From NCBI GenBank assembly GCA_001179505.1, contig CDMY01000287.1, positions 69,598-133,597 on the forward strand: a stretch of 64,000 nucleotides of DNA, in the 5' to 3' direction. Below are positions 18,930 to 64,000 of the stretch, in pieces (the first letter of the stretch is position 1; every line of letters begins with the position of its first letter). The notes beneath the pieces are model-generated. The model was not told the DNA's origin, did no database searches, and saw only the letters and a list, made by a program, of their open reading frames with translations. A program made the position numbers and the translations under genes. Origin of the DNA: Vitrella brassicaformis CCMP3155. Taxonomy: Eukaryota; Protista; Chromerida.

Positions 18930-19990
18930 TCTCTGGCCAATTGTTGTTGCTGCTGATGCTGGTCCTGCTCCTCCCTCTGCTTGCGCCTGGCCTCTGCAGA
19001 GAGAATCAATCCCATGTGTGTGGGGAAAGAGGTGCGTCTTGTTATTCTCTCACGTACCCCTCTCCTCCAGCTGCCGCAGCCACTCCCTCTCTCGCCGTCT
19101 CTCCTCTGCACACCATCCATCCATCCATCCATCATAAAGAAAACAATCTGCATGTGTATGCATCCCTCCTGACCCACCGGCCTCGTGCTGCACCTGCTGG
19201 ACCTGATTGACAGATGACAGATAGACATACATGGGGAGGGGCGTGTGTGCAGTCGAGTTGATGATACATACCTGGATGGCCGCCGGCTGGTGCTGGTCGT
19301 CCTGCTGCTCGTCGTCCTGCTCGTGCTGGTCGTGGGGGCTGCTGGTTGTCTTGGGGCGAGGGTCGAATATATGGGTCACAGGATATAAAATGTAGACGGC
19401 GATTTTCTTCTGAGACCATATGAGCAAACATATACGACCGTCGACAGGATGTTTGTGCACACATTGGGGGCCTGTCTGGTCACTCAGCCACACGTACCTT
19501 GCTGCCCCTCCTCCTGCTCCTGCTGGCCCTCCATCTGGGACTCGGCCTCCTGCTGCTCCTCGTCTGCAGACAGGCCAGACACCCAATTTCATTTGTGTAA
19601 CAGCCGTCCGTATCCGTCAGTGGGCCCACTGACCGCTGCCGCCGGCGAAGGGGATTTCATCGCCGTAGTTGCCCAAAAACCAGTTAGGGTGGCTGTGGAC
19701 GGGGTGGGCGTATTGCTGGTTGAAGCCCACCCACCAGATGTCTGCATCAATCGGTACACACAGCCCAACACACAAGGGGTGTCTGCGTGCACAGTGATGT
19801 GTCGCCCCCACACACACAGACATACCCTCGGGCTCTTCGTCGGTCCCCTCCCGCTCGGCCAGCTCCACGGCTGCAGCACCATAGACACAGTGAGCACATC
19901 CATCTCTGCCGTGTACGATGATCACTGATTGATTCCTCCTACCAGCTTGCATCTTGGCCGTCAGGCAGGCAGGCAGGCAGGCAGGCAGAG
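18930..19990 (-). pseudogene. Micro-exon family unit (middle cassettes only, including the Trp/His cassette)
   Basis: Exons AVELAEREGTDEEPE, DIWWVGFNQQYAHPVHSHPNWFLGNYGDEIPFAGGS (19634-19741), DEEQQEAESQMEGQQEQEEGQQ, ..QPAAIQ. No terminal CC exon is seen. Confidence 0.55.
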
Positions 19991-20345
19991 AGCCAGACAG
20001 ACAGACAGATAGACAACCNNNNNNNNNNNNNNNNNNNNNNNNNNNNNNNNNNNNNNNNNNNNNNNNNNNNNNNNNNNNNNNNNNNNNNNNNNNNNNNNNN
20101 NNNNNNNNNNNNNNNNNNNNNNNNNNNNNNNNNNNNNNNNNNNNNNNNNNNNNNNNNNNNNNNNNNNNNNNNNNNNNNNNNNNNNNNNNNNNNNNNNNNN
20201 NNNNNNNNNNNNNNNNNNNNNNNNNNNNNNNNNNNNNNNNNNNNNNNNNNNNNNNNNNNNNNNNNNNNNNNNNNNNNNNNNNNNNNNNNNNNNNNNNNNN
20301 NNNNNNNNNNNNNNNNNNCACACAGCACAGCGTCACACAGCACAT

Positions 20346-20924
20346 TCATCGGCAGCAGCTCTTCACCGACGGCCCTGGTCACAGAGAGAGAGATGAACAG
20401 AAGGGACCGATACAAATCTACCCCTCAGTAAATGTGCCCGTGTGTCTGGACATCTTACGGCGACGTGCAGCGGGCTGGATAGGTGAGGGCCCGACAGCCT
20501 GACAGACAAGACACCAGGCACAGAGAAACAAACATGGCTGAGATGCGGACACCATTGCTGAGCAGTTCCTCTGGTCACTCCACCCACCAGCAGCCGGTAG
20601 CCGACTGTGCATCTGATGGTCCGCTGACAACACACAGCAGGGAGCAAACGCATTGATGAGAACATCAGCCATTGATGCATTCACAGTGTTCTCACCACCA
20701 TGGTGGGCGGGCGCACCTCCGTCCACGCTTGGCTCCACAGGTACATGTACACCTTGGGCTGCACAGACCGACAGACGACAGATGGATAAACATGGAGGGA
20801 GGGAGGGAGGGAGGGAGGGGCGTGCGTGCAAATGGGGGGATACCTGAGTGGAAGCCGGCTGCTGCTGCTCGTGCTGCTGCTGCTGCTCAACGGCCTGCCT
20901 CTCCCTCTCGGCCGCCTCCTCTGC

Positions 20925-20955
<31 letters not shown>

Positions 20956-22860
20956 GACCATACGAACAAAGAATTTCGACAGGGTTTTTGTGCACACACA
21001 TTCGGCCAGCCCGTGTGCTTGCTGGTCGTCCTGGGGCGCGGGTCGAATATATGGGTCACAGGATATAAAATGTAGACGGCGATTTTCTTCTGAGACCATA
21101 TGAGCAAACATATACGACCGTCGACAGGGTGTTTGTGCACACATTCGGGGTCTCTCTGGTCACTCAGTCACACGTACCCTCCTGCCTCTCCTCCTGCTGC
21201 TGTTCGTAGTGCTCCTGCTGGGCCATGCGCGGCTGCGGCGCTGCTCATCCTCCTCGTGGGCCATCGCGCGGCGGTGCTGCTCGGCGGCCTCCTCCTCGGC
21301 CATCTGGCGACGCTGCTCTCCTCCTCGTGGGCCATCGCGCGGCGGTTCTCCTCCTCGGCCATGAGGCGGCGCTGCTCCTGCTCGGCGGCTTCCTTCTCGG
21401 CCATCTGGCGGCGCTGCTCCGCCTCTTCCTGCATGCGGTGGCGCTCGGCGGCCTCCTGGTCCTCGTCTGCAGACACGACAGCCGACAGCCACCATGGCAC
21501 GTGTCCGTATGTGAGAGCTGGTATCATTGGCATACCAGCTGCGCCCTTGATCTCGCCCTCTGCAGAGAGAAGACGGCACCAGAGTGACACGCAGCACATG
21601 TGTGTGGGTTTGTCGATATTCATGTGTGGCCTCGCACCCACCGTCGTTGAGCTGCCCGCCCTCGTGGTCGGGGATGTCTCCCCGCTCCTCGAACCACTGT
21701 ACGAATTCACCTTGATCCTGGCGCTGTTGCTGCACCTGACCAACCAGCCACACACAGGCCACAAAAGGGCAATGTGTGTGTGTGTGTGTGTGTGAGTGTG
21801 TGTGTTTGAGTGCGTCACGACAGTGCTGATTCTCTCGTGTGTGCATACCTTGGCCTTGGCGGTGGGCGAGGCGGGGAGTTCCCTAAAAAAAAAAAAAAAG
21901 GGCGGGGAGGGACTCCTGCACACATGGGAGACAACGGGACGATCGTCAGAGTGTTTGGCTGCCCTTCTTGTCATTCTGGCTCACGTACCTTTGTCGACAT
22001 CGTCCCCATCGCCCCCTGCACACACACGACAACACACGCAGACAGCAGCAATGGGTACCTGACTTGTTTCAGATTTTCTTTTGTTCCCGAACCATTGATG
22101 GCTTGTCCTTGGTGGTGTCGTTGGTGGTGTCGCCCTGGCCTGCACACACAGCCACACCCCACGCACATCCATCCATCCGTCCATCCATCCATCCGTCCAT
22201 CGACAGCTGCATGGTTTGTGTATTCACACCTGCTGCCTCCTGCTCGTCAGCATCCTTGTCAGCTGCACAAATGGAAGCACACAGCAACCACAACGAGTGT
22301 GTTTGTCATGTGTGGCTGGACTCCATATCTCTCACCCGCTCCGCGCTGGTCCTGTTGGTGCTTGATGCCGCCGAACGCCAGCACCTGCTCCATGCGGTGG
22401 GCTGCATACAGTCACACAAACGAATACCGACAGACAATCTCCCGCACTCCACAGCACGCACACATACCGGCGGCTTCCTTGTCGGTGTCCTGCTCTTGAA
22501 GGGCCATCTCGCCCTCCCGCAGGTAGGCCCAGATGGGCCCGCGCTGCTCCTCCTCCTCGTCGGCCATCGCGCGGCGCTCGGCCGCCTCCCGCTCCTCCCC
22601 TGCAGACAGACACGACAGCCACCCATTATGACACACCCCAGTATGTGAGTGTTCGTGTTCCCCTCACACCCACACATACCAGCGGCCTTCTTCTTCTTGA
22701 TGGCTGTATCGGTCGGCAACACAGACAGGTGCCACATGCGCACACAGCCATGGACACGTGTGTCTGCGGCTATGTGGTCACGCACTAGACGTACCTGCCT
22801 GCACCTGCTCCTGCTGCTCAGCCGCCAGTTGCAGCGACGCCTCATAGTGCTCCTCCTCTG

Positions 22861-22892
<32 letters not shown>

Positions 22893-22950
22893 ACAACCGA
22901 GCCGCTAACCATCACGCGCGTCGCTCTCTCAGTGTTTGTTCGTCCCCGTC
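20346..22950 (-). pseudogene. Micro-exon family unit with long Glu/Arg repeat, tail ending SVKSCCR*
   Basis: Tail exons PKVYMYLWSQAWTEVRPPTMV|RTIRCTVGYRLL|AVGPSPIQPAARR|PSVKSCCR*. Frameshifts lie in the repeat exon and at the poly(A) insertion. Confidence 0.6.
21870..21909 (+). mobile_element. Minimal poly(A) insertion with a 9-bp target-site duplication
   Basis: GGCGGGGAG-ttccct-A15-g-GGCGGGGAG. Paralogous exons near 35340 and 63680 carry a single copy of the site. Confidence 0.6.
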
Positions 22951-23560
22951 CGTTTCGCACCGAGCTGCTTAGACCGCCGGATCATGGCCCTCTGACGGTC
23001 CCTCTCTGCAGACAGTCGTGACAGCCGCACACCATGACATGACAAACGTGTGGATAGATATCATAGGCCTCTGTCTGTTTGCACCCGCATCGCATACCTT
23101 CTGGCGTGCCCTCGCCACGCACCAGCGACTTCAGCGCTTCCCAGGCTGCATGCCATGCATGGGTCGACAGACACAGGACAGAAAGAGACGGCTCTGTGTT
23201 TGCTGTCGACCCTCTCTGTGGGGGGCGGGGGGGGGGGGGGGNNNNNNNNNNNNNNNNNNNNNNNNNNNNNNNNNNNNNNNNNNNNNNNNNNNNNNNNNNN
23301 NNNNNNNNNNNNNNNNNNNNNNNNNNNNNNNNNNNNNNNNNNNNNNNNNNNNNNNNNNNNNNNNNNNNNNNNNNNNNNNNNNNNNNNNNNNNNNNNNNNN
23401 NNNNNNNNNNNNNNNNNNNNNNNNNNNNNNNNNNNNNNNNNNNNNNNNNNNNNNNNNNNNNNNNNNNNNNNNNNNNNNNNNNNNNNNNNNNNNNNNNNNN
23501 NNNNNNNNNNNNNNNNNNNNNNNNNNNNNNNNNNNNNNNNNGGGGGGGGGGGGGTACCGG

Positions 23561-25200
23561 GGTCACGCAGTTGGCCGAACTCCCTTGCTGCGTCCAAGCA
23601 CAGCAGCCAAAGGGTGACAGTCATGTGTGTGAGGGAAGCTGCCTGTGTCATTCGCACGTACCCTTTCGCCCTCCCAACTTCCAGTCCTTGGCCGCAGCCT
23701 CACCTGCCTCCCCAGCTGCACCAAGACAGACACATGCAGCACACACATATGACGCGTCTGTGGTCCCATCCATGTACTGCACGTGTTGGCAAACATACCG
23801 GCCAGGCCCTCCGTCACCTCGCGGGCCTCCTCACCTGGATCAGCCACGCACACACACAGTTCCCATCAACGAATGTGCATTTGTCGATAATGTATTGCCC
23901 CCGCACCCACCGTCGTCGTCCTGGTCCCCCTCGCCCTGCTGGAGGTCTCGGCGCCGGTCGAAGTGCTCGGCGAACTCCGCTGCAAATGCACAAGAGACAC
24001 AACACGTATCAGCCTGACCGTGATGGCGTACATGTGCCAATGTCACCTTCGTACCATCATGCTGCAGGCGCGTGATCCCATAGGCACAAGCACGGCAGCT
24101 GTGCAGATGCCGAAGGCGCGAGTCGAATGAAATATAGGCTACATAGACGGCGATTTGCTTCTGAATGGCAACACAGACGGGAGACGGAATGCACAGACAG
24201 ACGGAGACATGCAATGCANNNNNNNNNNNNNNNNNNNNNNNNNNNNNNNNNNNNNNNNNNNNNNNNNNNNNNNNNNNNNNNNNNNNNNNNNNNNNNNNNN
24301 NNNNNNNNNNNNNNNNNNNNNNNNNNNNNNNNNNNNNNNNNNNNNNNNNNNNNNNNNNNNNNNNNNNNNNNNNNNNNNNNNNNNNNNNNNNNNNNNNNNN
24401 NNNNNNNNNNNNNNNNNNNNNNNNNNNNNNNNNNNNNNNNNNNNNNNNNNNNNNNNNNNNNNNNNNNNNNNNNNNNNNNNNNNNNNNNNNNNNNNNNNNN
24501 NNNNNNNNNNNNNNNNNNGGGGGGCTACCGGGGTCGCGAAGTTGGCCGAGTCCTCTCGCTGCGTCCAGGCACAGCAGCCAAAGGGTGACAGTTATGTGTG
24601 TGAGGGAAGCTGTTTGTGTCATTCGCACGTACCCTTTCGGCCCCCCATCTTCCAGTCGTCCCTCCAGTTGCCGGCCGCAGCCTCACCTGCCTCCCCAGCT
24701 GCACCAAGACAGACACATGCAGCACACACATATGACGCGTCTGTGGTCCCATCCATGTACTGCACGTGTTGGCAAACATACCGGCCAGGCCCTCCGTCAC
24801 CTCGCGGGCCTCCTCACCTGGATCAGCCACGCACACACACAGTTCCCATCAACGAATGTGCATTTGTCGATAATGTATTGCCCCCGCACCCACCGTCGTC
24901 GTCCTGGTCCCCCTCGCCCTGCTGGAGGTCTCGGCGCCGGTCGAAGTGCTCGGCGAACTCCGCTGCAAATGCACAAGAGACACAACACGTATCAGCCTGA
25001 CCGTGATGGCGTACATGTGCCAATGTCACCTTCGTACCATCATGCTGCAGGCGCGTGATCCCATAGGCACAAGCACGGCAGCTGTGCAGATGCCGAAGGC
25101 GCGAGTCGAATGAAATATAGGCTACATAGACGGCGATTTGCTTCTGAATGGCAACACAGACGGGAGACGGAATGCACAGACAGACGGAGACATGCAATGC
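23561..25200 (-). repeat. Near-identical direct tandem duplication of about 650 bp of family cassettes, separated by an N gap
   Basis: 23561-24218 matches 24525-25198 (AEFAEHFDRRRDLQQGEGDQDDD and GEEAREVTEGLA exons with identical introns), with a few differences. Confidence 0.7.
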
Positions 25201-25203
25201 ACT

Positions 25204-25575
25204 GGTGCTCTCTGACCCGCCCTCCACGCCTAGGATCTTCTGCAGGACGCTGTCGAGGAACGTGTCACTCATGGCTGCCGCGCACAGAGACCAGCGACAG
25301 ACAGACAGATCACTGTTCTCGCCTCGCTTCCCGTCCCAACACCCCACACAGCACGGCCCTCTGCGTACCGTGCTGCTGCTGCTCCTGATGGTGCCCGTGC
25401 TTGTGATGGTGCTCGTGCTTGCTGCACACCACAACACACACACACACACACACACCAGGCATGTGCACTCATTCATCCCGATTCCACTCCAGGGTGAGCG
25501 TGTCTGGGCTGTCTGCCTTTCTCACCTCAGGAAGCCCTTGTACAGCTTCGATTTGGGGTTGTACAGCACCATCTT
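25204..25575 (-). pseudogene. Second, shorter copy of the CSN3-like fusion segment
   Basis: Duplicates about 16735-17105: MVLYNPKSKLYKGFL exon, His-rich exon, then MSDTFLDSVLQKILGVEGGSEST, after which the homology breaks. Confidence 0.6.
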
Positions 25576-25899: not shown

Positions 25900-28860
25900 C
25901 GACTTACCTCCCGTTGGCCAAATAGGGCAGCTGCATCCAGGCCGGAGGGCGAGGGTCGAATGAAATATGAGCCACAGGATATAAAATGTAGACGGCGATT
26001 TTCTTCTGAGACCATATGAGCAAACATATACGACCGTCGACAGGGTGTTTGTGCACACATTCGGGGCCTCTCTGGTCACTCAGCCACACGTACCTTCCTG
26101 CCTCTCCTCCTGCTCCTGCTGGTCCATCTGGGGCTCGGCCTCCTGCTGCTGCTCGTCTGCAGACAAGCCAGACACCCAATGTCATATCTGTAACAGCCGT
26201 CCGTATCCGTCAGTGGGCCCACTGACCGCTGCCGCCGACGAAGTGGCTGTCGTCGCCTTGGTAGCCCAGGAACCAGCTGGGGTGGCTGCGCACTGAGTGG
26301 GCATATTGGCCGTTGAAGCCCACCACCCACCAGAATTCTGCATCAATCGGTACACACAGCCCAACACACAAGGGTGTCTGTGTGTGCGTTTGTCGATAAT
26401 GTATTGCCCCCGCACCCACCGTCGTCGTCCTGGTCGCCCTCGCCCTTATCGCGGTCTCCCCGCTGCAGTGAGTGACTGAGATTGTGAGTGTGTAGCATTA
26501 TAAGCTGACATCCATCCATCCATCCGAAGGGCGAACGAAACACCAAACCACGCACTGAGGGAGGCAGTGAGGGAGCGGGGGAGTGAGTGAGTGAGTCGGG
26601 CAGGGAGAGAAGGGCGCGGCGCAAAACTGGCAGGCAGACAGACAGACAGATAGACAGACAGACAGACAGAGAGCCAGCCAGCCACACAGCACAGCACAGC
26701 GGCAGCAGGCCTTCATCAGCACCGGGTCTGTTCACACAGAGAGATAACCAGAAGGGACCGACACAAATCTACTCCACACAATGTGTGTGTGCGTGTGTGT
26801 GGACATCTTACCACGATGTGCAGCCAGGTGTGTGTGTGCGGGCCCAACGGGCTGACAGACAAGACACCAGGTACAGAGAAACAAACATGGCTGAGATGCG
26901 GACACCATTGCTGAGCAGTTCCTCTGGTCACTCCACCCACCACCAGGCGATAAGCGACGGTACGTCTGGTTGTCCGCTGACATGACACACAGCAGGAAGC
27001 AAATGCGTTGATGCGAACATCAGCCATTACGTAATGCATTCACAGTGTCCTCACCACCACAACGGGCGGGCGAACTTAAGTCCAGGACGCTTGAGCCCAC
27101 AGGTACACATACTGCTTCTGCTGCACAGATGGATAAACATGGAGGGAGGGAGGGGCGTGTGTGCAGTCGAGTGGATGATACATACCTGGATGGCCGCCGG
27201 CTGCTGCTGGTCGTCCTGCTCGGCCATCTGGCGGCGCTGCTGCTCGGCGGCCTCCTCCTCGGCCATCTGGCGGCGCTCGGCCGCCTCCCGCTCCTCGTCT
27301 GCTGCAGACAGGCAACACACCCGATGTCATTTGTGTAACAGCCGTCCGTATCCGTCAGTGGGCCCACTCACCGCTGCCGCCGGCGAAGGGGATTTCATCG
27401 CCGTAGTTGCCGAGGAACCACTGCGGGTGGCTGTGGACGGGGTGGGCGTATTGCTGGTTGAAGCCCACCCACTAGAAGTCTGCATCAATCGGTACACACA
27501 GCCCAACACACAAGGGGTGTCTGTGTGCACAGTGATGTGTCGCCCCCACACACAGACATACCCTCGGGCTCCTCGTCGGTCCCCTCCCGCTCGGCCAGCT
27601 CCACAGCTGCAGCGACACAGACACAGTGAGCACGTCCATCTCTGTCGTGTACGATGATCACTGATTGATTCCTCCTACCAGCTTGCATCTCCGCCTCTGT
27701 GACGAAACGGCACGCAACACATGCCATGCCGTGGAGCATACTTATCGGCAGCAGGCCTTGACCGAGGGCCCTGCTCACACAGAGAGAGATAAACACGAGG
27801 GATCGATACAAACTACCCCACACTCACCATATAAATATACATGTGCATGTGTGTGGACATCTTACGGCGATGTGTGGCGGTTTCGATGTGTGAGGGCCCA
27901 AAGGTCTGACAGACAAGACACCAGACACCGAGTAACAAACATGGCTGAGATGCGGACACTATTGCTGAGAAGAACCCACCAGCAGCCGGTAACCCAACGT
28001 CCGTCGCATCGTCCCCTGACAACACACAGCAGGAGGCAAATGCGTTGATGCGCCGCGCCCATCAGCCATTAATGCATTCACAGTGTCCTCACCACCACCA
28101 CGGGCGGGCGCACTTGAGTCCACGCCTGACCCCACAGGTAGACGTAGGTCTTCTGCTGCACCGTCGCCGCCTGCTGCTTGAGCTGGTGGACCTGATTGAC
28201 ACACGACACACATGGGCGGCCTAGGGGCGTGCGTGCAGTGGAAGGGATGATACCTTGATGGGGGCCGGCTGCTGCTCGTGTTGCTGCTGGTCGTGCTGCT
28301 CGTCAGCCGCCTCCTCTGCAGACAGACAGACAGACAGACACACAGACAGACAGACATGGACCGCATGAGCAAAGAATGTCGACAGGGTGTTTGTGCACAC
28401 ACATTCGGGGCCTGTATGGTCACTCAGCCACACGTACCCTCCTGCCTCTCCTCCTGCTGCTTCCGCTGGTCTTCCATCTGGCCGGCGTCTGCCGCCTCCC
28501 TCTCCTCGTCTGCAGACAGGCCAGACACCCAATGTCATATCTGTAACAGCCGTCCGTATCCGTCTGTGGACCCACTCACCGCCGCCAGATGAGTTGTCGT
28601 CGCCTTGGTAGCCCAGAAACCAGCTGGGGTGGCTGTGCATGGGGTGGGCGTATTGCCGGCCGAAGTCCATCCACCAGACGTCTGCATCAATCGGTACACA
28701 CAGCCCAACACACAAGGGGTGTCTGTGTGTTCATTTGTCGATAATGTATTGCCCCCGCACCCACCGTCGTCGTCCTCGTCGCCCTCGCCCTGCAGTAGGT
28801 CTCCCGCTGGTCGAAGTGCTCGGCGAACTCCTCGTTGTCGGGCCGCTGCTCATCTGAACA
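25900..28860 (-). pseudogene. Three consecutive micro-exon family units, each with a Trp/His cassette
   Basis: W cassettes at about 26226-26339, 27370-27479 (TGG>TAG) and 28576-28679. Terminal exons SVKACCR* (TAA 27742-27744) and LMKACCR (stop mutated TGA>TGT near 26695). Confidence 0.6.
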
Positions 28861-31649: not shown

Positions 31650-34600
31650 AGAGCTAGTCTGTCTACCGGTTTGGTATCTATTGCTGTGCGGCACGTGAAG
31701 TGAAGAGCAGGTCGTGTTGTGTCTATTCGGTCACTGAGTGGCTGGCGAGCCACCACTCACACCGCACACGAACACACACACACTCATCCTGTCTGCCGGT
31801 AGCTAGCTGACTGAGCGCTGCGGCCCCAGACCTGTGTGGGTGTGCGTGTGTGGCAACTACAAACAAAGGCAGGTCAGGACGCCACACTTGAGTTGACGTC
31901 CACATCAGTCCATCCACACGGACCCGAATCCTCATTGCACACACACGCAGGCCACACCCACACATACGCGCGTATGTGTAGCCAGCCAAGCAGCCGCCAT
32001 CAGAGTGGTCCAAGCAAGGCTCTCTCTTGTGTTTGTCTGTGCACCCAGCATACGTATACATACTCCATTCATCGATTGACCGATCAGTCACGCACGTCGA
32101 GTCGACTGCACACCACACACTGCCCCCACGGCAGCCATCGTGTGGCCTCAAGATGACCAACAACACCCTGTCCTCTCCCCCGCCAGGCCTAGGTGGATGG
32201 ATGATGGATGTGTGTGCATCAAACGTGACCAGATCGCACTCACTGACAGCCGGCCCTTGGCCCATCCCTCAACCATATGTGGGGACGGACACATCTATAG
32301 CTGTCATGGATGACTGGGGGCCCGGTGGGGGGGGTAGATTGAAGAAAAGTAGCGACAGACAGAGAGAAAAACCGAGCGACGCACATGCGTATGTATGTGT
32401 GCATGTGCACAAACCAGCCAGACAGACAACACACCAATCGCCCCTCCCGTCCGTCAGTCCCGCCATCCAGGCACTCCTTTGAGTACGTGTCTGTCTGTGT
32501 GTGTCCAGAGTAGCAATCTCTCACGCGAGTCACGCTTGTGCATCAAGAAAAGTCATCTCAGTCGCCCCCTCACACAGTGACGGTGTGGTGTGGTGTGTCC
32601 ACGTGTGCGCTGGCTGGGGCGGCCGAGACAGACAGCCCAAAGGTCCGTTTGGCAGTCACGAGAGTCAAGAATCAAGGCATCCATCACGCAGCAATCTTGC
32701 GGCCATGCAGCCGAGCTATAGGTAGAGATAGAGGGGTAGAGAGAGCGAGATGGGATGTGGTGTGGACTGGAGTGGACACCTCGCTCACTCGCTCACTCCT
32801 TGTGCGTCCATCCGTGGAGTACACACACGAACTTACCGACGCACACATAGATACGTACGTACGTATGGAGTGGAGTGCAGTGCAGTGCACCACTCCTGAC
32901 TGACTGACATGTGTGTCGTGTGTATGTGCGTTGCATGAGTGACGAAAAACCAACCAACCGACCACGCCACGTCCATCCCTCCATCCATCCCTCCATCAAG
33001 AATATATAGATATCATGACCCGATCCAGTCAGCCATGAGATAGATAGCATTCCATGGACGGTCGAGTCAGTAGGGATTAGGAAGTGAGTAGGGGGTGATG
33101 GTGGCTGGGGTGGTGGTGACTGATGTGATGTGTGGTGGACGGACAACTTATGCCCCTCTCTCCCCGATAGTCAGCCAGCCATATATATTCACCATTCCAT
33201 TGATACGATGACATCACATCAACAACACACACAAAACAAAGCAAAAGGCCGAGCGATCACATCAATTAACACATCCATCCATCCAGCCAGGCAGCGAACA
33301 CACTCGTACGATCATCGTCATCCATCCACAAGCCTCATGGATGGCATGGCTCCCATGCCATCCATGCCATCCGTCCACTCGACACGCCCCCCACGGCACA
33401 CCACACTGCGAAAAATCAAATTCATAATCAATCGGTCATCATCATTGTTTGTCATCATCCCCAAGATGATGTCATGTCATGCTAAAGCACTGTACACCAC
33501 CGCACGACGGACACACCATTAGCCGCTGCCCCTCACACTCAGACCACAGACACCAGCCGTCAACCCACTGCATAGCCACACGTGCGCGCGTGTTATCGAT
33601 CAATCAGACTGAGTGGGTGGGTGGGGTGACTGAGAAAGAGCTGGGAGGACGGCCGAGCCGAGCCGAGCCGCGTGTTTGCTGTGGGTCGGTCGTCGAAAGA
33701 AAAAGACGATATATATACGGACGGCGTGGAGGGGTGGAGAGGGGAGAAGACAGATTACGCTTAGATAGATTACGGCCACACGTGGGTGGGATGACTGAGA
33801 GAGACCAGCCACCCAGGCAGGCAGGCCGGCCAGTCGTCGTCCAATCGCACCACACACACCAAGAGCACGCAGTGAGTGAGGGAGGGAAGTCATCAATCAT
33901 CGGCAGCTGGATTTCAGGGTCGGGCCTGCACACGGTCAGTCAACAGCAAGGGTCAACACACAATTAAGTGTCTGTCCGCCTTATTCGCCGCACTCGTGTA
34001 TATATGTACGGTGAGTGCATCTCACGGCGGTGGTGAGCGGCTGGCGGCGTCATGGTGGGCAGCGGCAGCGACTGACAACACACAAAGCACCAGGGAGATC
34101 CCTCATGAAGACCTCCTCCCTGACGTCCATCCATTCACCCACCGGCTGCGTCAGCCAGCTCTGTCTCAGGATGGTGGGCGAGCGACTGGGCGAGGGCACG
34201 AGCGCCTGACGCACCAGGCACACAGAAACAAACACAAAGCGCGAGATGCGGACACACATCAGTCCATCCATCCACTCATGTGTGTCGCTCGCGAACCACC
34301 ACTCTGTAGCCAATGGTTTTCGTGATGGTGCGCTGACACAACACAGCAGGAAGCGACAATGGGTGTGTGTACGTATGGACACACTGATGATGCGCTCACC
34401 GTCGCTATGACCGCTCCCGGTGTCCACTCGAGGCTCTGTGGCACGTGCACATCCTGGTCCTGCTGGTCCTGCTGCTCCTGCTGCTGGGGCGCCACCTCAG
34501 CGATCTCCGGCGCCTCACTGTCGCCCTCAGGCCGCACGTCGCCCTCTGCAATCCATCAGTGGGCGTACACGCAGAAAAGACATCCGTTGACTTGACATGT

Positions 34601-35420
34601 GTGTGTCTTCATGCCCATGCGGTGAATACGTACCTGCCGCCAGCTCAGCACCGTCGTCAGGTCGCTGCTGCTCGTCTGAACCACCCAAGGCAACAATGGC
34701 AAGGCCTTTATCCTTACCCTCTCAGACATCAACGCACAGCACTCTTACCGTCGCCGTGGCAGCCTGAGAACCACTGCGGGTGGCTGTGCACAGTGGGGTC
34801 GTGCTGTCGCTGGTGGTCATCTACCCATATGTCTGTATCGATACACACAGCCCAACACACAACGGTGTGTGTGTGCACAGTGATGTGTTGCCCCCACACA
34901 CACAGACATACCCTCGGGCGGCTCCTCGTCGATGCCCTCTCGCTCGGTCCGCTCCACGGCTGCAGCAGCACAGACACAGTGAGCATGTCCATCTCTGCCG
35001 TGCGATGATCACTGATTGATTCCTCCTACCCGCCCTCTGCGCGGCCGTCGCGTCGTCTTGCTCCTCTCCTGCAGAAATGACATGAGACAACGAGCAGGGA
35101 GGCGCCCATGTGCTATAGGACAGATGTACGCGTATCTCTCTAGATATTGACGTAGTACCTTCTGGCTGGCTGTGGTCGTGGCTGCCGTCCTGCTGGTGGG
35201 CTGGCTGGGCCTGCTGCTGCACCCAACCAACCACACACGAGAAGGGTAATGTGTGTGTGTGTGTGTGTGGTTGTGTGCGTCACGACACTGCTGATTCTCT
35301 CGTGTGTGCATACCTTGGCCTTCGGCTTGGCGGTGGGGGAGGCTGGGAGGGACTCCTGCACACATGGGCGAGGCTGTATACAACCATGACAAGAAAGAGC
35401 GACACGTGTGACTTAGAGGA
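31650..35420 (-). repeat. Left arm of a diverged inverted duplication; contains a family unit (33897-35520) ending LKSSCR*
   Basis: 31650-31950 matches rc 43130-43430, 33800-33870 matches rc 41690-41790, and 33900-35420 matches rc 39860-41390, in mirror order. Confidence 0.7.
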
Positions 35421-35705
35421 GACAGACGGACACAAAACCATCCTTGGATACCTGGGTGGCTGACTGGTGCTGGTCCTGCGTGGCTGATGTTGCCACCTCC
35501 TGCTGCTGCTGCTGCACACAAGTATCACACAACATCACAACACACACACGGGAATGCACGACAAGTCACGACCACCAATAAGAGGCGTGTGTATATGGGC
35601 AGGCCACCATAAGTGTGTCATTTCTTCCTGCGTACCTCCGTCTCCTGTTGCTGGGCAGTGGGGCCGGGCGACGCTTCCTGCACACACACACATGTACAAG
35701 AGATG

Positions 35706-37210
35706 TCATGACATTCTTCGTTTAGCGTCCAGCACGTTTCTCGCCTGGTGCGAGTCCTGCTCTTCATCATCATCATCGCCGTCGTCGTCGTCGATGTCGT
35801 TGTCGTCGTCGCCGCTGTCGTCAATGTCCCTCTCGAGCTTTTGCTCATCGCCGAAGTTGGACGCAACTGACAGCTGGTCGAGTTCGTCCCCCTCCTCCTC
35901 TCCCCCAGACGACTGCATACATACAGCCAAAAGATGGACCTGCTATGCACTGCTCATTTATTCAACTCAGTACTACCAGGTTACCTCGGCCTCCTCTGAC
36001 TCCCACTCGGCCTCCTCCGGCTCCGAGTCCTCCTCCTCCCTCAGCTCCCTGTCCTCACCGATGGACGGCATGCCTGGGTGCCAGAGGTTCTCCTTCTGCA
36101 CGCAACCAACACAGCACACACAAGAAGCGACGTGTGTGTGTATCCATGTGTATGCTGTGATAGCTAGTACATACCTTGCTGTCGCGTCGGGTGCTCGAGG
36201 ACGCCGCCACGCCCTGCATGCACACATGCATGCACATGTCACATGACACACTCCTGTGAGCAAGTGCGTTACCGTAGGCTCAGGCAGCTCGGTGTCGTCC
36301 CCCTCGCCGTTGTCTGCACACAGACAGAGAGAGGCAGGAGGCAAGGAATACCCATGCACGCATAGAGGGAGATGATTGTCGTTTGAGTGCGCGAGTACCT
36401 ACCGTCGTCCCCAGACTCGCCTTCGCTCTCCTCCTCCTGCTCCTCGGCATCGTCGGCAGGTGCTTGAGAGGCCTGTTGGACACAACCAGATGAACGAAAC
36501 ATTCATTTATTCATTCATTCACTCACTCACTCGCAAAACGACTTACCTCATCGTCTTGCGAGTCGTTTTCCATCGGCCCGTCCTCGATGGCCGCCACCGC
36601 CCCCTGCTGCTGCACCTGCACACAATCAGCAGAGGACGCAAAGGGAGCGACGCGTGTGTGTGTGCGTATGCAATTGGCAAGACACACGACATGGTGCGCT
36701 GTCGTACGTACCTGGGCGGCTTGTAGCCGGTCCATCGATGCGAACAGTTCCTGTACACGCGTGCACACCCATGCCAGCAGTCGGGTGAGAGACCCCCGAG
36801 TTTGCAAATAGGTACCCTACCGCTGCGTCGGGCAGCTCGAGCCCCTCATAGTCACCATCCTCCTCATCAGCAGCAGCTGCCTGCTGTTGCTGCTGGTGGT
36901 GGTGGTGTGGCGGCCCCTGATGCTGTTGCTGCTGCGGCTGCACATAGCCATCAACAAGCAGCAGCATGTGCGTATGCATATCGTGGGGCGGGCGGGTGGC
37001 TACCTGGGTGCTCTCTTGCCGTTTCCCTGGAGCCTCCTGGATATGATGTGTGGCACCAGGACACATACAAACGAACACTCTCCACCATTTCACATGACAC
37101 ATCGGTGGGCTGATGGCCTACCACTGTTTGGACGGGCTTCCTCTTGCCCTCCCCCTCCTCATCAGCTGCCGCATCAGGCGGCCGGTCCCTCCCTCGGAAC
37201 TGAAACACAC
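35706..37210 (-). CDS. Hypothetical Asp/Glu/Gln-rich low-complexity multi-exon protein
   Basis: Exons such as QQQQQAAAADEEDGDYEGLELPDAA, VQQQGAVAAIEDGPMENDSQDDE, EDRELREEEDSEPEEAEWESEEAE, DELDQLSVASNFGDEQKLERDIDDSGDDD. A related exon lies at 56652-56790. Confidence 0.4.
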
Positions 37211-49279: not shown

Positions 49280-51245
49280 TTACCCAGACATTTCCCGTCG
49301 AAGGTGCAAGCAAGTCGAGGAGACAGGAGACCACCAGATATAAAATGTAGCCAGCGATATCTGCATAGACAAACAGTCCTTCTTTTCCCCGCCCACTGAT
49401 CTATCGGCGCAAAGGTACGGACCCTTGCGCCGCTCCGCCGCCTTGAGCGCAGCGGGCTGGATGGGTGCGGGCCCAACGGCCTGACAGGGAAGACACCAGG
49501 CACAGAGCAACAAACATGGCTGAGATGCGATGCGGACACCATTGCTGAGCAGTTCTTGTGGTCACTGCACCCACCAGCAGCCGATAGCCTAAAGTTCGTC
49601 GCATCGTCCGCTGACAAGACACACAGCAGGGAACAAACGAGTTGATGAATCCACCAGCCATTAATGCATTCACAGTGTCCTCACCACGACGATGGGCGGG
49701 CGCAATTGGGTCCAGGCCTGGCTCCACAGGTAGACGTACTTGTGCTGCACAGATCGACAGACGACAGATGAATAAACATGGAGGGAGGGAGGGAGGGGCG
49801 TGTGTGCAGTCGAGTTGATGATACATACCTGGATGGCCGCCGGCTGCTGCTGGTCGTCCTGCTGCTCGTCGTCCTGCTCGACGGGCCCCTCCCGCTCGGC
49901 CGCCTCCTCTGCAGACGGACAGACAGACAGACAGACAGACCGACAGGGAGAGAGAGAGAGCCAGTAGCCCGTCAGTCAGTTAGTCAGTCACCCCATTTGC
50001 CCCCTCACTCATACACACACACATGCAGGTTGGCACAGCACAGCACAGCACAGCCCCCTCAGCGGCAGCAGGTCTTGATCAGCGACGGCCCTGCTCACAC
50101 AGAGAGAGATAAACAGAAGGAACCCATACAAATCTACCCCACAGTAAATGTGCCCGCGTGTGTGTGTGTGGACATCTTACGGCGATGTGCAGCAGAGTGG
50201 ATCGGCACGGGCTCGACCGCCTGACAGACAAGACACCAGGCACAGAGAAACAAACATGGCTGAGATGCGGACACCATTGCTGGGCAGTTCCTGTGGTCAC
50301 TCCACCCACCACCAGGCGATAAGCGACGTTCGTCTCGTTGTCCACTGACAAGACATAGGAGGGAGCAAATGCGTTGATGCGAAAATCAGCCATTAATGCA
50401 TTCACAATCTCCTCACCACAACAACGGGTGGTCGAACTTGGATCCAGGCCTCACTCCACAACTGGACGTACTTGTGCTGCACCTGCTTGCCACACGGCAG
50501 GCAGATGGACACACATGGACAGAGGGACGTGTGTGCAGTCGAGTTGATGATACCTGGATGGCCGCCGGCTGCTGGTCGTCCTGCTGCTCGTGCTGCTCGT
50601 CGAGAGCCTCCCTGTCCCTCTCGGCCGCCTCCTCTGCAGACCGGCAGACAGACAGACAGACAGAGACCCCATGAGCAAAGAATGTCGACAGGGTGTTTGT
50701 GCGCACATTCGGGGCCTTGTCTGGTCACTCAGTCCTGCGTACCTTGCTGCCGCTTCTGCTCATGCTGCTCCTCCTCGGCGGCCTCCTGCTCGGCCACCTC
50801 GCGGCGCTGCTCCTGCCCGGCGGCCCTCAAGCGGCGCTGCTCCTCCTCCTTGGCGGCCATCTCGCGGCGCTGCTCTTCCTCCTCGGCGGCCATCTTGCGG
50901 CGCTGCTCCTCCTCGGCGGCCACCTCGCGGGCCTCCTCACCTGGATCAGCCACGCACACACACAGTGTCACACACAGTTCCCATCGACGAATGTGCATTT
51001 GTCGATAATGTATTGCCCCCGCACCCACCGTTGTCGTCCTGGTCGCCCTCGGCCTGCGGGAGGTCTCCCCGCTGCTCGAAGTGGCGGGCGAACTCATCTG
51101 AAAAAACGACAGACCAGCAGGGCATGACCATGAGGCAGGCGCGCTGAGACCAGGCACACTCAAATGGTACCTGCGTCCTCTGCATCGTCTTGGTCGTCCT
51201 GCTGGTGCTCCTTGTGGGCGTGGTGGGCCTGCTGCTGCACAGCCA
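49280..51245 (-). pseudogene. Two micro-exon family units (one ending LIKTCCR*, one with a replaced 3' end)
   Basis: DEFARHFEQRGDLPQAEGDQDDN, GEEAREVAAEEEQRRKMAAEEEEQRR.., VQHKYVQLWSEAWIQVRPPVVV, stop at 50059-50061. A 1-nt deletion lies in the RTTRRTV exon near 50325. Confidence 0.6.
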
Positions 51246-53005: not shown

Positions 53006-53531
53006 ACGCACACACGCAGACACGCAGACACACACATGAAGGACGATCACGAGAGAGCTTCAGTGGGTGTGCGGGCCTTCAGTGGATGACGCACCTGAGT
53101 CGTGAGGAGAGAGGTATATATATCCCACTTGGCTGATGAACAAGGACGGTTCTGACCGCTGGTTGCCTACGTTTAAAGACCTGGAACGCTGCACAACCAG
53201 CACACATTTTCAGTGCAGACACGGGATGGGTCGGTGTGTACGGTTGATACCTGTTTGTGTGTAAGACTCTGCTCACGTTCACCTTAGATCAGGGTCCCCG
53301 GCTGCCTGCATACAAAACAGTGTCTCACCATATTCATGTCTGCTCCATCGTTGTGCATACCAGGATGAAATCACCTCGGAGATTTAATATAAGGCGCAAG
53401 ACCAGGGAGACATAAGATGCCTCGGGATATGAAATGTAGGAAGCGATATCTGAGACACCGAACACATCTTTTACCGATTCCGCGCTCCCAACTTTCCTAC
53501 ATCATCATACCTGCCCCTCCCTCCTCTGCGT

Positions 53532-54145
53532 CTAGCCGCAGCACTTGGCTGCCGGGTGGCCTGCACACATGCACATATAAACAACAGAAGTCAATAGGAC
53601 AAAAACGCTCGACACTTATGTGTGTGGGGTACGCATCTTACGTGGGGCAACGCCCACGGGATCAACACGCGTCAGTGTGGTGATGCGCCGGGAAACCATC
53701 TGACCGATGACACACAAAGCACGAACCACAGAAGGTCAGTGTGGCATCGCCCGTTCGCCCACACGTGAGGAGCACTACTAGGTTTCTGTTTGCTCACCTT
53801 GGGCGGCAGGTAGTGTGACGTGATGCTTGTCCGCAGCAGCTTGACGGCCTTCACACGCTGACAACACACAGCAGGAAGCACAGACATGCTTTGCTGCACA
53901 CGTGTGTGTGTGTGTGTGTGAGTGAGTGTGTGTGGGCACACTGATGATGTCCTTACCTGGCTAACGACAGGGAAACGCCAGTCATACGGCACCTGCTGAA
54001 CACGACATACGCCATAGATGTTCGCATGACAAGAGAAAAACACCGCATGTACTTCTGCACCCATGTACCTTTGTGCCTGGCGCCAATGCCTCCCGTGCCG
54101 ATTGAGCAGGTACACCTGCTCCAGGCGGAGGTAATGCTGGGTCTG
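53532..54145 (-). CDS. Divergent subfamily-2 tail ending HPAAKCCG*
   Basis: QVPYDWRFPVVSQ|RVKAVKLLRTSITSHYLPPK|MVSRRITTLTRVDPVGVAP|RHPAAKCCG*; TAG at 53532-53534. Confidence 0.5.
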
Positions 54146-54299
54146 CAGACATGCAGTCAGTGCACACAAGAAGGAACACATGTGTGTGTTGATTGACAGG
54201 TGTTAGGGGCTCGCTCACTGACGTCTGCCCCAACCGAGGCCATAAAGCATGTATGTCTCAAAGCACACACCTCAAGGCGTCAAAGTACACCCCATCCTA

Positions 54300-58744: not shown

Positions 58745-60000
58745 GACCAGGGAGATAAAAGACGCCTCGGGATATAAAATGTAGGAAGCGATATCTGAGA
58801 CACCGAACATCTCTTTTTACCGACTCCCAGCTCCCAACTTCCTACATCATCATACCTGCCCCTCCCTCCTCTGCGTCTAGCCGCAGCACTTGGCTGCCGG
58901 GTGGCCTGCACACATGCACATATAAACAACAGAGGTCAATAGGACAAAAACGCTCGACACTTATGTGTGGGGGGTACGCATCTTACGTGGGGCAACGCCC
59001 ACGGGATCAACACGCGTCAGTGTGGTGATGCGCCGGGAAACCATCTGACCGATGACACACAAAGCACGAACCATTGAAGGCGAGTGTGTCACCACCCATT
59101 CGCCCACACGTGAGGAGCATTACTAGGTTTCTGTTTGCTCACCCTGGGCAACAGGTAGTGAGAAGTGATTTTGGTCTGTAGCACCTTGACGCTCGTGACA
59201 CGCTGACAGACACAGATAGAAGCACAGACATGCTTTGCTGCATCCGTGTATGTGTGTGTGTGTGTGTGTGTGTGGACATCTTACGGCGATGGGTAGCGAG
59301 GTGGATCGGCACGGGCCCGACCGCCTGACAGACAAGACACCAGGCACCGAGAAACAAACATGGCTGAGATGCGGACACCATTGCTGGGCAGTTCCTGTGG
59401 TCAATAGTACAAATACTCCCCACACTTAGGTGTGTGAGTGTGTGTGTGCATCTTACGAGGGGCCACTTACGAGGGGCCACGCCGAGAGGTCCGGCAGGTG
59501 CGAGTGTGGTGATCCGACGCGCCACCATCTGACCGATGAAACACAAAGCACCGAGTGTGCCATCACCCCTTCAGCCTCCTATGTGCTCACCCTCGGCAGC
59601 AGATAGTGGGACGTGATGTTAGTCCGCAGCAGCTTGACGGCCTTCACACGCTGACAGACAGACACAGCAGGAAGCACAGACATGTTGCACACGTGTGTGT
59701 GTGTGTGTGTGTGTGTGAGTGCAGGCACACTGATGATGCCCTTACCTGGCTAGCGACAGGGAAACGCCAATCATACGGCACCTGCTGAACACAGAACCGA
59801 CATACGACGCAGATGTTCGCATGTACTCAGCACCCATGTACCTGGCAGTGGATGGGTCTCTTGTGCTCCGCCTCGTCGACGCCGGTGTTCATCGGGAACG
59901 ACACACCCCTACACGGACACACACGCCAAAACAGTGACCATCAGCCAGTCGGAGGCATGGATGTCTTCTGGGGCTCTCCAGCCAGTCGGGTGACAGACCT
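58745..60000 (-). pseudogene. Second subfamily-2 tail (ending AAKCCG*), interleaved with subfamily-1 exons
   Basis: 58745-59240 is a near-identical direct repeat of 53395-53895. TAG at 58877-58879. The subfamily-1 exon AVGPVPIHLATHR is inserted at about 59290-59330. Confidence 0.55.
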
Positions 60001-60349
60001 CACCTGGCTCATGAACGTCGACCTATGACCGAAGAAGACCGACCCCTGCAGCCAGCAACAAACAGAGAGAGCGACCAAGGCCATTTGGTGGCTTTGGTTT
60101 CGTCTTTCATCCATCGACCAATTAATACACCCACCTGGGATCGTAACGAGTGGTGGCTTCCGAGAACTGCAATGTGAAAGGCAGACGTACACCCCCCCAC
60201 ACACATACGCAGACAGAAACATGATCATACGAACCGCCCGCCAGTGTCTCTGTGAGTGAGTGAGTGTGCTTACACGGCGGGCCTCTGCTGTCCCCTCAGC
60301 GACCTTCTTGGCCTCGGCACTGTCGTCGAACGATGCCTGCTCCTGCAGA

Positions 60350-62110
60350 CAGTGCCGAGGAAGAGATGCCTACCTCTCAGTGTGTGGATGAGATGCCAAG
60401 AGAAAGAGAGAGAGATGCACACAGACTTGTGGCTGCATACCTGGATGGCAGCCTGCTGCTGCTCCTGGGTCTCGGTCTCTCGCACCGTCACGAACTGCTG
60501 GTACGAGAACGCCAGAACACACCACACATGTCCACGCATTCATGTGTGTGTGTGTGTGTGTATGCGCATACCCTCTTACGTGCGGCAACGCTGACCGGTC
60601 CGGCAGGTGCGCGAGTGCAGAAGTAGTGCAGACAGGCCAGACACCCAATGTCATATGTGTAACAGCCGTCCGTATCCGTCAGTGGGTCCACTCACCGCTG
60701 CCGAAGTGGCTGTCGTCGCCTTGGTAGCCCAGAAACCAGCTGGGGTGGCTGTGAAGTGGGTGGGCGTATTGCCGGCCGAAGTCCATCCACCAGAAGTCTG
60801 CATCAATCGATACACACAGCCCAACACACAAGGGTGTCTGTGTGTTCGTTTGTCGATAATGTATTGCCCCCGCACCCACCGTCGTCGTGGGGCTGCTGGT
60901 TGTCTTGGGGCGAGGGTACGAATGAAACATGAGCCACAGGATATAAAATGTAGACGGCGATTTTCTTCTGAGACCATATGAGCAAACATATACGACCGTC
61001 GACAGGGTGTTTGTGCACACACATTCGGGCCCTGTCTGGTCACTCAGCCACACGTACCTTGCTGCCTCTCCTCCTGCTGCTTCCGCTGGTCTTCCATCTG
61101 GCCGCCGTCTGCCGCCTCCCGCTGCTCGTCTGCAGACAGGCCAGACACCCAATGCCATATTTGTAAGTAACAGCCGTCCGTATCCGTCAGTGGGCCCACT
61201 CACCGCCGGCAGATGAGTTGTCGTCGCCGTAGTAGCCGAGCACAGCACATTCATCCGCAGCAAGTCTTGAGAGACGGGCCTGCTCATACACACAGAGAGA
61301 GATAAATAGAAGGGACCGATAGAAATGTACCCCACACACTGTGCGTGTGTGTGTGTGTGTGTGGACATCTTACGGCGATGTGTGGCGGGTTGGATGTGTG
61401 AGGGCAAAAAGGTCTGACAGACAAGACACCAGACACCGAGAAACAAACATGGCTGAGATGCGATGCGGACACCATTGCTGAGCAGTTCCTGTGGTCACTC
61501 CACCCACCGGCAGGCGGTAGCCGACTGTGCGTCTGGTGGTTCTCTGACAACACACAGCAGGGAGCAGATGCGTTGATGCGCCGCGCCCATCAGCCATTAA
61601 TGCATTCACAATGTCCTCACCACCACCACGGACGGCCGCAGCTCTGTCCACGATAGACCCCACAGGTACATGTACACCTTGGGCTGCACTGGCGCCGCCT
61701 GCTGCTGCTGTTGCTGGTTGATCTGATTGACACACGACACACACGGAGGGAGGGACAATTGGGGAGATGCGCGTGTGCAGTCGAGTGGATGATACCATGA
61801 TGGGGGCCGCCTGCTGCTGGTCGTCCTGCTGCTGCTGGTCGTCCTGCTCGTCAGCCGCCTCCTCTGCAGACAGACAGACAGAGACCCCATGAGCAAAGAA
61901 TGTCGACAGGGTGTTTGTTCACACACATTCGGGGCCTGTCTGGTCAATCAGTCCTGCGTACCTTCCTGCCGCTTCTCCTGCTGCTGCTGGTCCACGGCGC
62001 CGCGGCGCTCGGCCTCCTGCTCCTCGTCTGCTGCAGACAGGCCAGACACCCAATGTCATGTGTGTAAGTGACAGCCGTCCGTATCCGTCAGTGGGCCCAC
62101 TCACCGCCGG
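60350..62110 (-). pseudogene. Two partial micro-exon family units (one ending SLKTCCG*)
   Basis: W cassette at about 60694-60797; PVQPKVYMYLWGLSWTELRPSVVV; stop at 61251-61253. Confidence 0.55.
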
Positions 62111-62288
62111 CAGATGCGTATGTCTGTATGCATTTGTATGTATGGGTACACTTATGCAATGCATCACATAGTACTCAGTAAGTCTGGTGAGGGAGTTAGC
62201 CAATGAGGGAGTCGGCAGCCGGGCAGGCAGACAGACAGACAGGCAGCCAGACAGCCAGACAGACACCCACCCACACAGCGCAGCACAG

Positions 62289-63800
62289 TCAGCGGCAGCA
62301 CGTCTTCGCCAGCGACGGGCCTGTTCACACAGAGAGAGATGAACAGAAGGGACCGATACAAATCTACCCCACACAATGTGTGTGTGTGTGTGTGTGTGTG
62401 GACATCTTACGGCGATGTGTGGCGGTTTGGATGTGTGAGTGCCCAAAGGTCTGACAGACAAGACACCAGGCACAGAGAAACAAACATGGATGGGGTGCGG
62501 ACACCATTGCTGAGCACTTCTTCTGATCTCCACCCACCGGCAGGCGGTAGCCGACTGTGCGTCTGGTGGTTCTCTGACAACACACAGCAGGGAGCAGATG
62601 CGTTGATGCGCCGCGCCCATCAGCCATTAATGCATTCACAGTGTGCTCACCACAACAACGGGCGGGCGCAATTGGGTCCAGGCCTGGCTCCACTGGTAGA
62701 CGTACTTGTGCTGCACAGATCGACAGACGACAGACAGATGGATAAACATGGAGGGAGGGAGGGGCGTGTGTGCAGTCGAGTGGATGATACATACCTGGAT
62801 GGCCGCCGGCTGCTGCTCGTCCTGCTGCTCGTCGTCCTGCTCGACGGGCCCCTCCCTCTCGGCCGCCTCCTCTGCAGACAGACAGACACACAGACAGACA
62901 GACGCAGACCATATGAGCAAACATATACGACCGTCGACAGGGTGTTTGTGCACACACATTCGGGCCCTGTCTGGTCACTCAGCCACACGTACCTTGCTGC
63001 CTCTCCTCCTGCTGCTTCCGCTGGTCTTCCATCTGGCCGCCGTCTGCCGCCTCCCGCTCCTCGTCTGCAGACAGGTCAGACACCCGATGTCATATGTGTA
63101 ACAGCCGTCCGTATCCGTCAGTGGGCCCACTCACCGCCGACGAAGTGGCTGTCGTCGCCTTGGTAGCCCAGGAACCAGCTGGGGTGGCTGCGCACTGGGT
63201 GGGCATATTGGCCGTTGAAGCCCACCACCCACCAGAAGTCTGCATCAATCGGTACACACAGCCCAACACACAAGGGTGTCTGTGTCTTCGTTTGTTGATA
63301 GCGTATTCCCCCACCCACCGTCCTCGTCCTGGTCGCCCTCGCCCTGCTCGCGGTCTCCCCGCTGCTCGAAGTGCTGGGCGAACTCCTCGTCGTCGTGCCG
63401 CTCGTCATCTGAACAAACATCAGACCAGCAGGGCATGACCATGAGGCAGGCGCGCTGAGACCAGGCACACTCAAATGGTACCCGCGGCCTCTTCGTTGTC
63501 TTCCTCGTCCTGCTGGCGCTGCTGGTGGGCTGGCTGGGCTTGCTGCTGCACCCACCCAACCAACCGCACACAGGCGACAAAAGGGCAATGTGTGTGTGTG
63601 TGTGTTTGGGTGCGTCACGACACTGCTGATTCTCTCGTGTGTGCATACCTTGGCCTTGGCCATGGCTGTCGGTGAGGCCGGGAGGGACTCCTGCACACAT
63701 GGGAGACAACGGCACGATCGTCAGAGTGTTTGGCTGCCCTTCGTGCCATTCTGGCTCACGTACCCTCGTGCTCATCGTGTTCATGGCCCCCTGCACACAC
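62289..63800 (-). CDS. Micro-exon family unit with an intact in-frame splice path (5' end uncertain)
   Basis: Manual splice: GAMNTMSTR|ESLPASPTAMAKAK|QQAQPAHQQRQQDEEDNEEAA|DDERHDDEEFAQHFEQRGDREQGEGDQDED|DFWWVVGFNGQYAHPVRSHPSWFLGYQGDDSHFVG|DEEREAADGGQMEDQRKQQEERQQ|EEAAEREGPVEQDDEQQDEQQPAAIQ|HKYVYQWSQAWTQLRPPVVV|RTTRRTVGYRLP|TFGHSHIQTATHR|RPSLAKTCCR*. All junctions are GT-AG with compatible phases. Confidence 0.65.
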
Positions 63801-64000
63801 AGACGACAACACAGGCAGACAGCAGCAATGGACCTGGCTTGTGTCAGACTTCTCTTCTCCCCGAACCATTGCCGGCTTGTCGGCGGCGTTGGCGTCGTTG
63901 GTGGTGGTGCCGGGTCGATTAAAATGGTAAAGAGACGGCTCTATGTCTGCTGTCGACCCTCTGTGTGTGGGGGGGGGAGGGGGTGGGGGTAGGGTATGGG

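Follow-up and report, generated by a model that had tools for sequence, protein, structure and literature searches.

The DNA analyzed here, a window of 64,000 nucleotides (nt), is the terminal part of a 133,597-bp scaffold (C287) of Vitrella brassicaformis CCMP3155 and is GC-rich, intron-rich and eukaryotic. It contains an array in which one multi-exon module is present about 15 times, as complete or partial units and mostly on the minus strand. Exons of 21-105 nt, and a single larger one of 198 nt, are repeated along with their introns (Blast E values of 1e-20 to 1e-70), which bears out the proposal of an earlier note on this DNA that the copying took place at the DNA level. One unit of the alpha type (U1) and two copies of a diverged, paralogous beta type are intact; the remaining units are headless, exon-truncated, frameshifted or stopped. 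Projection of the U1 exons onto all copies showed that about 60 of 70 exon copies are open.

The sole intact alpha unit, U1, occupies 62289-63869 on the minus strand and has twelve exons, with AG/GT at every internal splice junction:

63869-63834, minus strand: head exon E0, with the ATG
63790-63764, minus strand: head exon E1
63690-63649, minus strand: head exon E2
63545-63482, minus strand: head exon E3, phase 0-1
63408-63319, minus strand: middle exon E4, phase 1-1
63239-63135, minus strand: middle exon E5 (Trp/His exon), phase 1-1
63064-62993, minus strand: middle exon E6, phase 1-1
62871-62795, minus strand: exon E7, phase 1-0
62710-62651, minus strand: tail exon E8
62573-62538, minus strand: tail exon E9
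62450-62411, minus strand: tail exon E10, phase 0-1
62320-62289, minus strand: tail exon E11, with the TGA

In order, the phases are 0-0 three times, 0-1, 1-1 three times, 1-0, 0-0 twice and 0-1, followed by the last exon with TGA; this is the succession of phase-0 head, symmetric middle and phase-0 tail that had been predicted. The spliced length is 681 nt, corresponding to 226 codons plus TGA with zero internal stops, and the introns measure 43-170 nt. The middle exons E4, E6 and E7 resemble one another as well as two exons named after their translations, AVEL and GEEARE. The middle of the gene is built of paralogous phase 1-1 exons. E1, which also carries an ATG, has an acceptor site, and the in-frame E0 with its own ATG lies upstream of it; an N-myristoylation at the "MG" of E1 was dropped as a candidate once E0 had been found.

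The predicted U1 protein of about 226 amino acids has an isoelectric point of 4.7, with a short head, a Glu/Asp/Gln-rich middle of net charge -26 and a basic tail with the C-terminus K-x-C-C-R; the Trp/His exon contributes the invariant motif HSHPxWFLG. No leader or membrane segment was found in this product, whose hydropathy on the Kyte-Doolittle scale (over 15 residues) peaks at 0.29, with a maximum of -0.13 within the first 50 residues. Predictions indicate a disordered protein. Its acidic middle and basic tail may hint at a nuclear or chromatin partner, and the C-terminal Cys-Cys at S-acylation, but both ideas are guesswork.

The other alpha units and the recurring element associated with them are located as follows:

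61251-62124, minus strand: U2, headless, a 12-nt remnant of E5 followed by E6-E11, all open
60627-61240, minus strand: U3, fragments comprising E5 (3' end only) and E6, which breaks off into the "ENRR" element, followed by the last part of E4 and by E5 (60797-60696)
50059-51234, minus strand: U4, with E3, a short E4, an enlarged E6 and E7, E8, E9, E10 and E11, without E0-E2 and E5
49452-49908, minus strand: U5, with E7-E9 and a partial E10 that gives way to diverged sequence
27742-28853, minus strand: U6, with a frameshifted E4 of 89 nt and E5-E11 open
26695-27688, minus strand: U7, a pseudogene with an ATG mini-exon, the AVEL exon (27606-27562) and a fused E6/E7
26094-26467, minus strand: U8, with a partial E4, E5 and E6 before it breaks off into the ENRR element
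23542-25210, minus strand: two 99% identical copies on either side of a run of N (24219-24518), with a shortened E4, a GEEAREV exon that is likewise short and further exons
20346-23160, minus strand: U9, with extra upstream exons including homologues of the beta exons X1 and X2, and with E7-E11 open
19260-19952, minus strand: U10, with an ATG mini-exon, AVEL, E5, E6 and a partial E7
19340-19522, 21020-21202, 25936-26118 and 60898-61080: the ENRR element of about 180 nt, which reads ..ENRRLHFIS.. in the public gene model P0001

U2 begins approximately 165 nt past the stop codon of U1. The ENRR element joins the intron between E6 and E7 at one constant point in every case and behaves like a further cassette. 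The cassette contents given earlier for the units at 62-64, 50-51 and 27 kb were found as described, but the latter two do not serve as examples of working units: the unit at 27 kb (U7) has a TAG in E5, a TAA in E8 and an E11 without its stop, and the one at 50 kb (U4) has no E0-E2 and a frameshifted E9 of 35 nt. Furthermore, GEEARE is not a separate cassette, since it proved to be the E6 of U4, enlarged to 198 nt (50940-50743) by internal repeats of 30/33 nt. In U9, E0 is frameshifted to a TGA, E2 contains a T-run insertion and a stop, and E6 is repeat-expanded. A fixed head and tail, as originally proposed, could not be confirmed either: E1-E3 are present only at about 63.8, 39.8 (plus strand), 35.3 and 22.0 kb, with E3 alone at 51.2 kb; other exons precede the module in four copies, namely both beta copies, U9 and U6; and several units are cut within E5.

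The beta paralogues form an inverted pair, and a more diverged gene with a similar tail lies between U3 and U4:

39303-41389, plus strand: beta(+), intact, beginning with exons X1, X2, E0 and E1, then E2 at 39889-39930
40021-40099, 40190-40228, 40299-40355, 40436-40519 (Trp/His) and 40588-40629, plus strand: further exons of beta(+)
40718-40875, 40943-40978, 41070-41132, 41204-41252 and 41361-41389 (..KACCR*), plus strand: last exons of beta(+)
33897-35355, minus strand: beta(-), intact, the inverted partner of beta(+)
58890-60520, minus strand: gamma-like tail gene, more diverged, ending in ..KCCG* and read by eye

Between two E9/E10-like repeats of the gamma-like gene lies an alpha-type E10 (59324-59285). 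The 3' end of this gene has a 96% identical copy at 53494-53793.

Comparison of the units showed that their introns, at 89-99% identity, are better conserved than the exons between them, at 71-83%. In eight aligned tails, mean pairwise identity is 89% for the intron before E9 and 93% for the one before E10, compared with 76%, 75% and 71% for E8, E9 and E10. The middle of the module behaves in the same way, with 99.2% for the 3' half of the intron before E5 and 93.8% for the intron E5-E6 versus 82.8% for E5 and 80.5% for E6. The introns concerned are, with U1 coordinates:

63240-63282, minus strand: 3' half of the intron upstream of E5, 99.2% identical in six copies, irrespective of whether E4 or AVEL lies upstream
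63065-63134, minus strand: intron E5-E6, 89-96% identical to seven other copies, all within the array
62451-62537, minus strand: intron E9-E10, 93% mean pairwise identity, its 3' half conserved in the beta copies too

CpG decay was rejected as the cause of the exon divergence, since the contrast persists at non-CpG sites, where exons differ by 24.7% and introns by 6.4%. Divergence of E9 and E10 together amounts to 24, 17 and 39% at the three codon positions, and pairwise ratios of nonsynonymous to synonymous divergence (dN/dS) in the tail exons, a check that had been proposed earlier, are 0.1-0.5 (0.76 in one pair) with dS from 0.2 to more than 1. Because of this codon-position pattern and these ratios, the tail exons appear to be old and selected as coding sequence. 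The idea of a diversifying family is not supported by these values, which indicate purifying selection, nor by the state of the variants, most of which are truncated or broken. Divergence of E5 is nearly equal across codon positions (17, 15 and 20%). Exon divergence within the inverted beta pair is 14.4% (dS 0.275, dN 0.13, dN/dS 0.47) and intron divergence 5.6%, while the distal arms of the pair are only 83% identical or unalignable. Since these flanks have diverged, the introns seem to have been held similar rather than the exons hypermutated, and a hypermutation targeted to exons is unlikely.

The introns might instead be conserved through a function of their own, for instance as signals for the splicing of exons of 32-40 nt or for cassette choice. 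The 3' halves of several introns are indeed conserved between alpha and beta units though the exons are only about 55% identical, and the two types share 89-90% identity in the intron that precedes AVEL. However, a search of the intron E9-E10 against Rfam matched no family, its consensus fold is weak and shows no covariation, and no complementary pairs of the docking/selector type were found within a unit, where the only inverted matches are GT/CA low-complexity sequences. On balance, intron function seems an unlikely explanation of the contrast. For the same reasons the locus differs from Dscam-type mutually exclusive exons, as neither docking/selector pairs nor a covarying intron structure were detected here.

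The units are also mosaic. Distance matrices calculated by exon revealed two to four types of each tail exon, which are combined differently among units. U2 and a unit on the small scaffold C885 differ at 16 of 478 positions left of a break and at 49 of 175 right of it (maximum chi-square, p ≤ 0.001); the breakpoint, 62450, is the first base of E10. Trees of the separate segments, another check proposed earlier, are incongruent according to approximately unbiased (AU) tests: the clade of U2 and the C885 unit has support of 99/97 left of E10 and is rejected right of it (AU p 0.013), whereas the clades {U4, C885} and {U1, U2, U6} fit the right segment and are rejected on the left (AU p 0.0018 and 0.0005). 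In addition, the intron preceding E5 is a chimera: its 5' half tracks whichever exon, E4 or AVEL, lies before it, and the 3' half tracks E5. This pattern is what an exchange of exons together with their half-introns would give. The remodelling by intronic recombination that had been suggested for the array is supported by the chimeric intron, the breakpoint at E10 and the AU-incongruent trees.

The scaffold was assembled from Illumina reads with velvet (k=75) and SSPACE scaffolding, and genes were predicted with Augustus using intron hints from RNA-seq (PMC4501334). Five runs of 300 N each are present in the window, three of them within the array and each of these between units:

20019-20318: separates the U9 stop codon from the mini-exon with which U10 starts (ATG)
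23242-23541: upstream of U9, flanked by poly-C runs
24219-24518: between the two 99% identical blocks, adjoining poly-C

Zero of the exon chains used here cross any of these three gaps. The 99% identical blocks on both sides of gap 24219-24518 may be one copy that was scaffolded twice. Poly-C runs are found at the scaffold end (63929-64000) and beside two of the gaps (23183-23241, 23542-23560 and 24519-24521), and they probably broke the assembly. Ahead of both U1 and the extended U9, the poly-C is followed by a conserved motif of about 38 nt, which may be a unit boundary or a promoter.

These features raise the question of whether the locus holds merely one or two working genes amid debris, the mosaicism being due to decay and chimeric short-read assembly with no exchange of exons. 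That only U1 and the beta copies are intact would fit, as would the breakpoints of U2 and U3 inside E5, the gaps with the duplicated block beside one of them, and the public model P0001, which reads around stops. Near-identical stretches of at least 75 nt are open to misjoining by the assembler, although k=75 confines chimeras to at least 75 identical bases. Misjoining cannot create the contrast between exons and introns, which is therefore not an assembly product, and a collapse of introns of 70-95 nt flanked by divergent exons is unlikely under velvet with k=75 (PMC4501334). The codon-position signature and a dN/dS below 1 extend across many units, including headless ones, and the large open fraction of exon copies likewise speaks against mere debris. 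We therefore regard this explanation as quite unlikely.

Taken together, the locus is probably an orphan tandem family in which birth-and-death is combined with intron-anchored recombination or conversion and the exons form islands of divergence. Units would be gained and lost through unequal crossing-over, partial duplication and decay, and short-tract recombination or gene conversion would end in the short introns. A few old exon sequence types would thus persist while the introns are kept near-identical across units, and whole exons would be exchanged with their half-introns, yielding units with different combinations of exon types and cassettes. We infer that conversion keeps the introns alike and that expression takes place from the intact units.

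Several points weigh against this interpretation. It is based on a short-read scaffold with gaps, from which the family spills onto two small scaffolds, and some linkages, such as that between U2 and the C885 unit, could be assembly chimeras at near-identical units. The number of sites behind the divergence figures is small (36-105 nt per exon), E6 and E7 are of low complexity and give soft alignments, and the clades submitted to AU tests were named after the distance tables had been seen. Moreover, a single genome does not allow conversion to be distinguished from a direct constraint acting on the introns.

In searches of the whole genome (72,700,666 bases, 1064 scaffolds), matches to the Trp/His exon and to the head and tail of the module were confined to the window and the small scaffolds C885 and C1009, which makes the family a single local array instead of a large repertoire. 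C1009 (6335 bp) repeats the inner ends of the beta inverted pair, and C885 contains two or three further alpha units, one of which is 97% identical to U2 up to E10; both scaffolds may be continuations of the array or alternative assemblies of it. For protein searches, the U1 product was used exon by exon and joined only for codon count and composition. A profile built from six copies of exon E5 and compared with 1.84 billion representatives matched three Vitrella models only. Two word searches returned only the public models P0008 and P0016; a word search with the open frame containing E5 gave no candidate, and one with P0001 retrieved only P0001 itself, low-complexity words having filled the candidate list. 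Pfam searches with single exons, public models and neighbouring open reading frames (ORFs) yielded nothing for the family, and no relatives were found in metagenome contigs. The ESM Atlas offered no usable look-alike, its model of P0008 having a predicted local distance difference test score (pLDDT) of 0.37, and a single-sequence AlphaFold2 prediction of P0008 reached a pLDDT of 44 without a fold being obtained. Judged by these searches, the family appears to be Vitrella-specific, an orphan confined to one local tandem array.

Genes unrelated to the module were found next to the beta copies and downstream of the array:

37852-39224, plus strand: copy of SEC13 (WD40) that ends without its own stop codon and whose frame is disrupted by one base near 38.2 kb
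35400-37200, minus strand: strongly acidic multi-exon gene with Asp/Glu runs, corresponding to the N-terminal 330 residues of P0008, without a Pfam match
16235-17008, minus strand: ORF immediately downstream of the array that weakly matches the helical repeats at the N-terminus of COP9 signalosome subunit 3 (CSN3; PF22788, E 3e-5, below the curated cut-off)

Two more SEC13 copies, 98% and 88% identical in one exon, are located on scaffolds C165 and C1036. Fragments of other genes close by, such as the SEC13 copy and the CSN3-like ORF, would be expected if a mobile element or introners had spread these sequences. Such a spread is extremely improbable: the two conserved introns that were searched genome-wide gave 8 and 9 matches, all at homologous positions in the array, the ORFs scanned contain no transposase domain, and the units stand in tandem in one orientation. 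Introners in particular were rejected, as no intron matches were found at non-homologous sites.

The public models CEL99732.1, CEL99734.1 and CEL99735.1 were found by exact look-up. Public models of this region fuse units together or to unrelated upstream genes. P0001 strings together U6, U7 and U8, their defects being read around, and P0002 extends from U10 into further Glu/Arg-rich exons as far as about position 18475. In P0008 (513 amino acids) the acidic upstream gene (about 35.4-37.2 kb) is joined to beta(-), and in P0016 (668 amino acids) the SEC13 copy is joined in frame to beta(+), skipping the damaged blade; the junctions of P0016 within beta(+) are those obtained by manual reading. 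Cross-unit splicing appears only in these Augustus-type models that read around stops.

If such splicing, or conversion into an expressed copy, took place in the cell, the truncated units could be donors or alternative cassettes of a working diversification system. The phase-1 donor of E10 joins in frame to E5, E6 or AVEL, and P0001 makes use of such a join; the headless units keep open exons, and one intact unit stands at the array end. Nevertheless, this scenario is improbable, given a product with no leader or membrane segment and no obvious surface target, a tail under purifying selection, a free-living organism and a small array. It is likewise quite doubtful that the near-identical introns are adapters for exchanging old, diverged but phase-compatible exon cassettes between units or for splicing them across units, through which the array generates variant acidic proteins with headless units as donors.

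Among described systems, the micro-exon genes (MEGs) of schistosomes have exons of 3-81 bp, introns of up to 5 kb and a signal peptide, and vary by exon skipping (PMC10526429). The Vitrella family shares with them a run of short phase-symmetric internal exons between ordinary end exons, lineage specificity and disordered products, here by prediction. It differs in its exons of 21-105 nt, of which E4 (90 nt) and E5 (105 nt) exceed the MEG range although phases are symmetric, in its introns of 43-170 nt and in having neither a leader nor any sequence similarity to MEGs. A further comparison is with conversion systems that have islands of divergence. Homogenisation of introns in the major histocompatibility complex is one example of conversion. 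Interlocus conversion that leaves islands of divergence has been described for GOT1p1/p2 of Tigriopus (PMC3728101). In such systems, high identity between copies is broken by sharply diverged coding islands and rare exchanges create new combinations. The Vitrella array has the same properties, both in the divergence of introns and exons, among the units as in the beta pair, and in its mosaic genealogies and breakpoints, the latter within a short-read assembly and with clades chosen post hoc. Here, however, almost all of the short exons of a 12-exon gene form such islands, and they do so across about 15 units that are mostly broken.

In snake-venom phospholipase A2 and conotoxin genes, introns are also more conserved than exons, the products are secreted and dN/dS is near or above 1. 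The intron divergence of the Vitrella units lies likewise well below both dS and dN of the exons, but dN/dS is below 1 in the tail and in the beta pair, and the flanks of the beta pair indicate introns held similar and not accelerated exons. Archives of cassettes for antigenic variation, as in the variant surface glycoproteins (VSG), vlsE and msp2, resemble the array in the presence of an intact copy beside many truncated ones, in conserved blocks that flank variable segments and in mosaicism. Unlike these, Vitrella is a free-living alga, the predicted product lacks a leader or membrane segment, and the conserved blocks are introns.

Understood as an orphan tandem family with intron-anchored exchange, the locus would represent exon shuffling among paralogues caught in the act, in which exons travel with their half-introns and introns are several-fold better conserved than the adjoining synonymous sites. 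If confirmed, it would provide a compact model for how intron identity channels recombination, and for asking whether chromerid algae remodel gene families in this way genome-wide.

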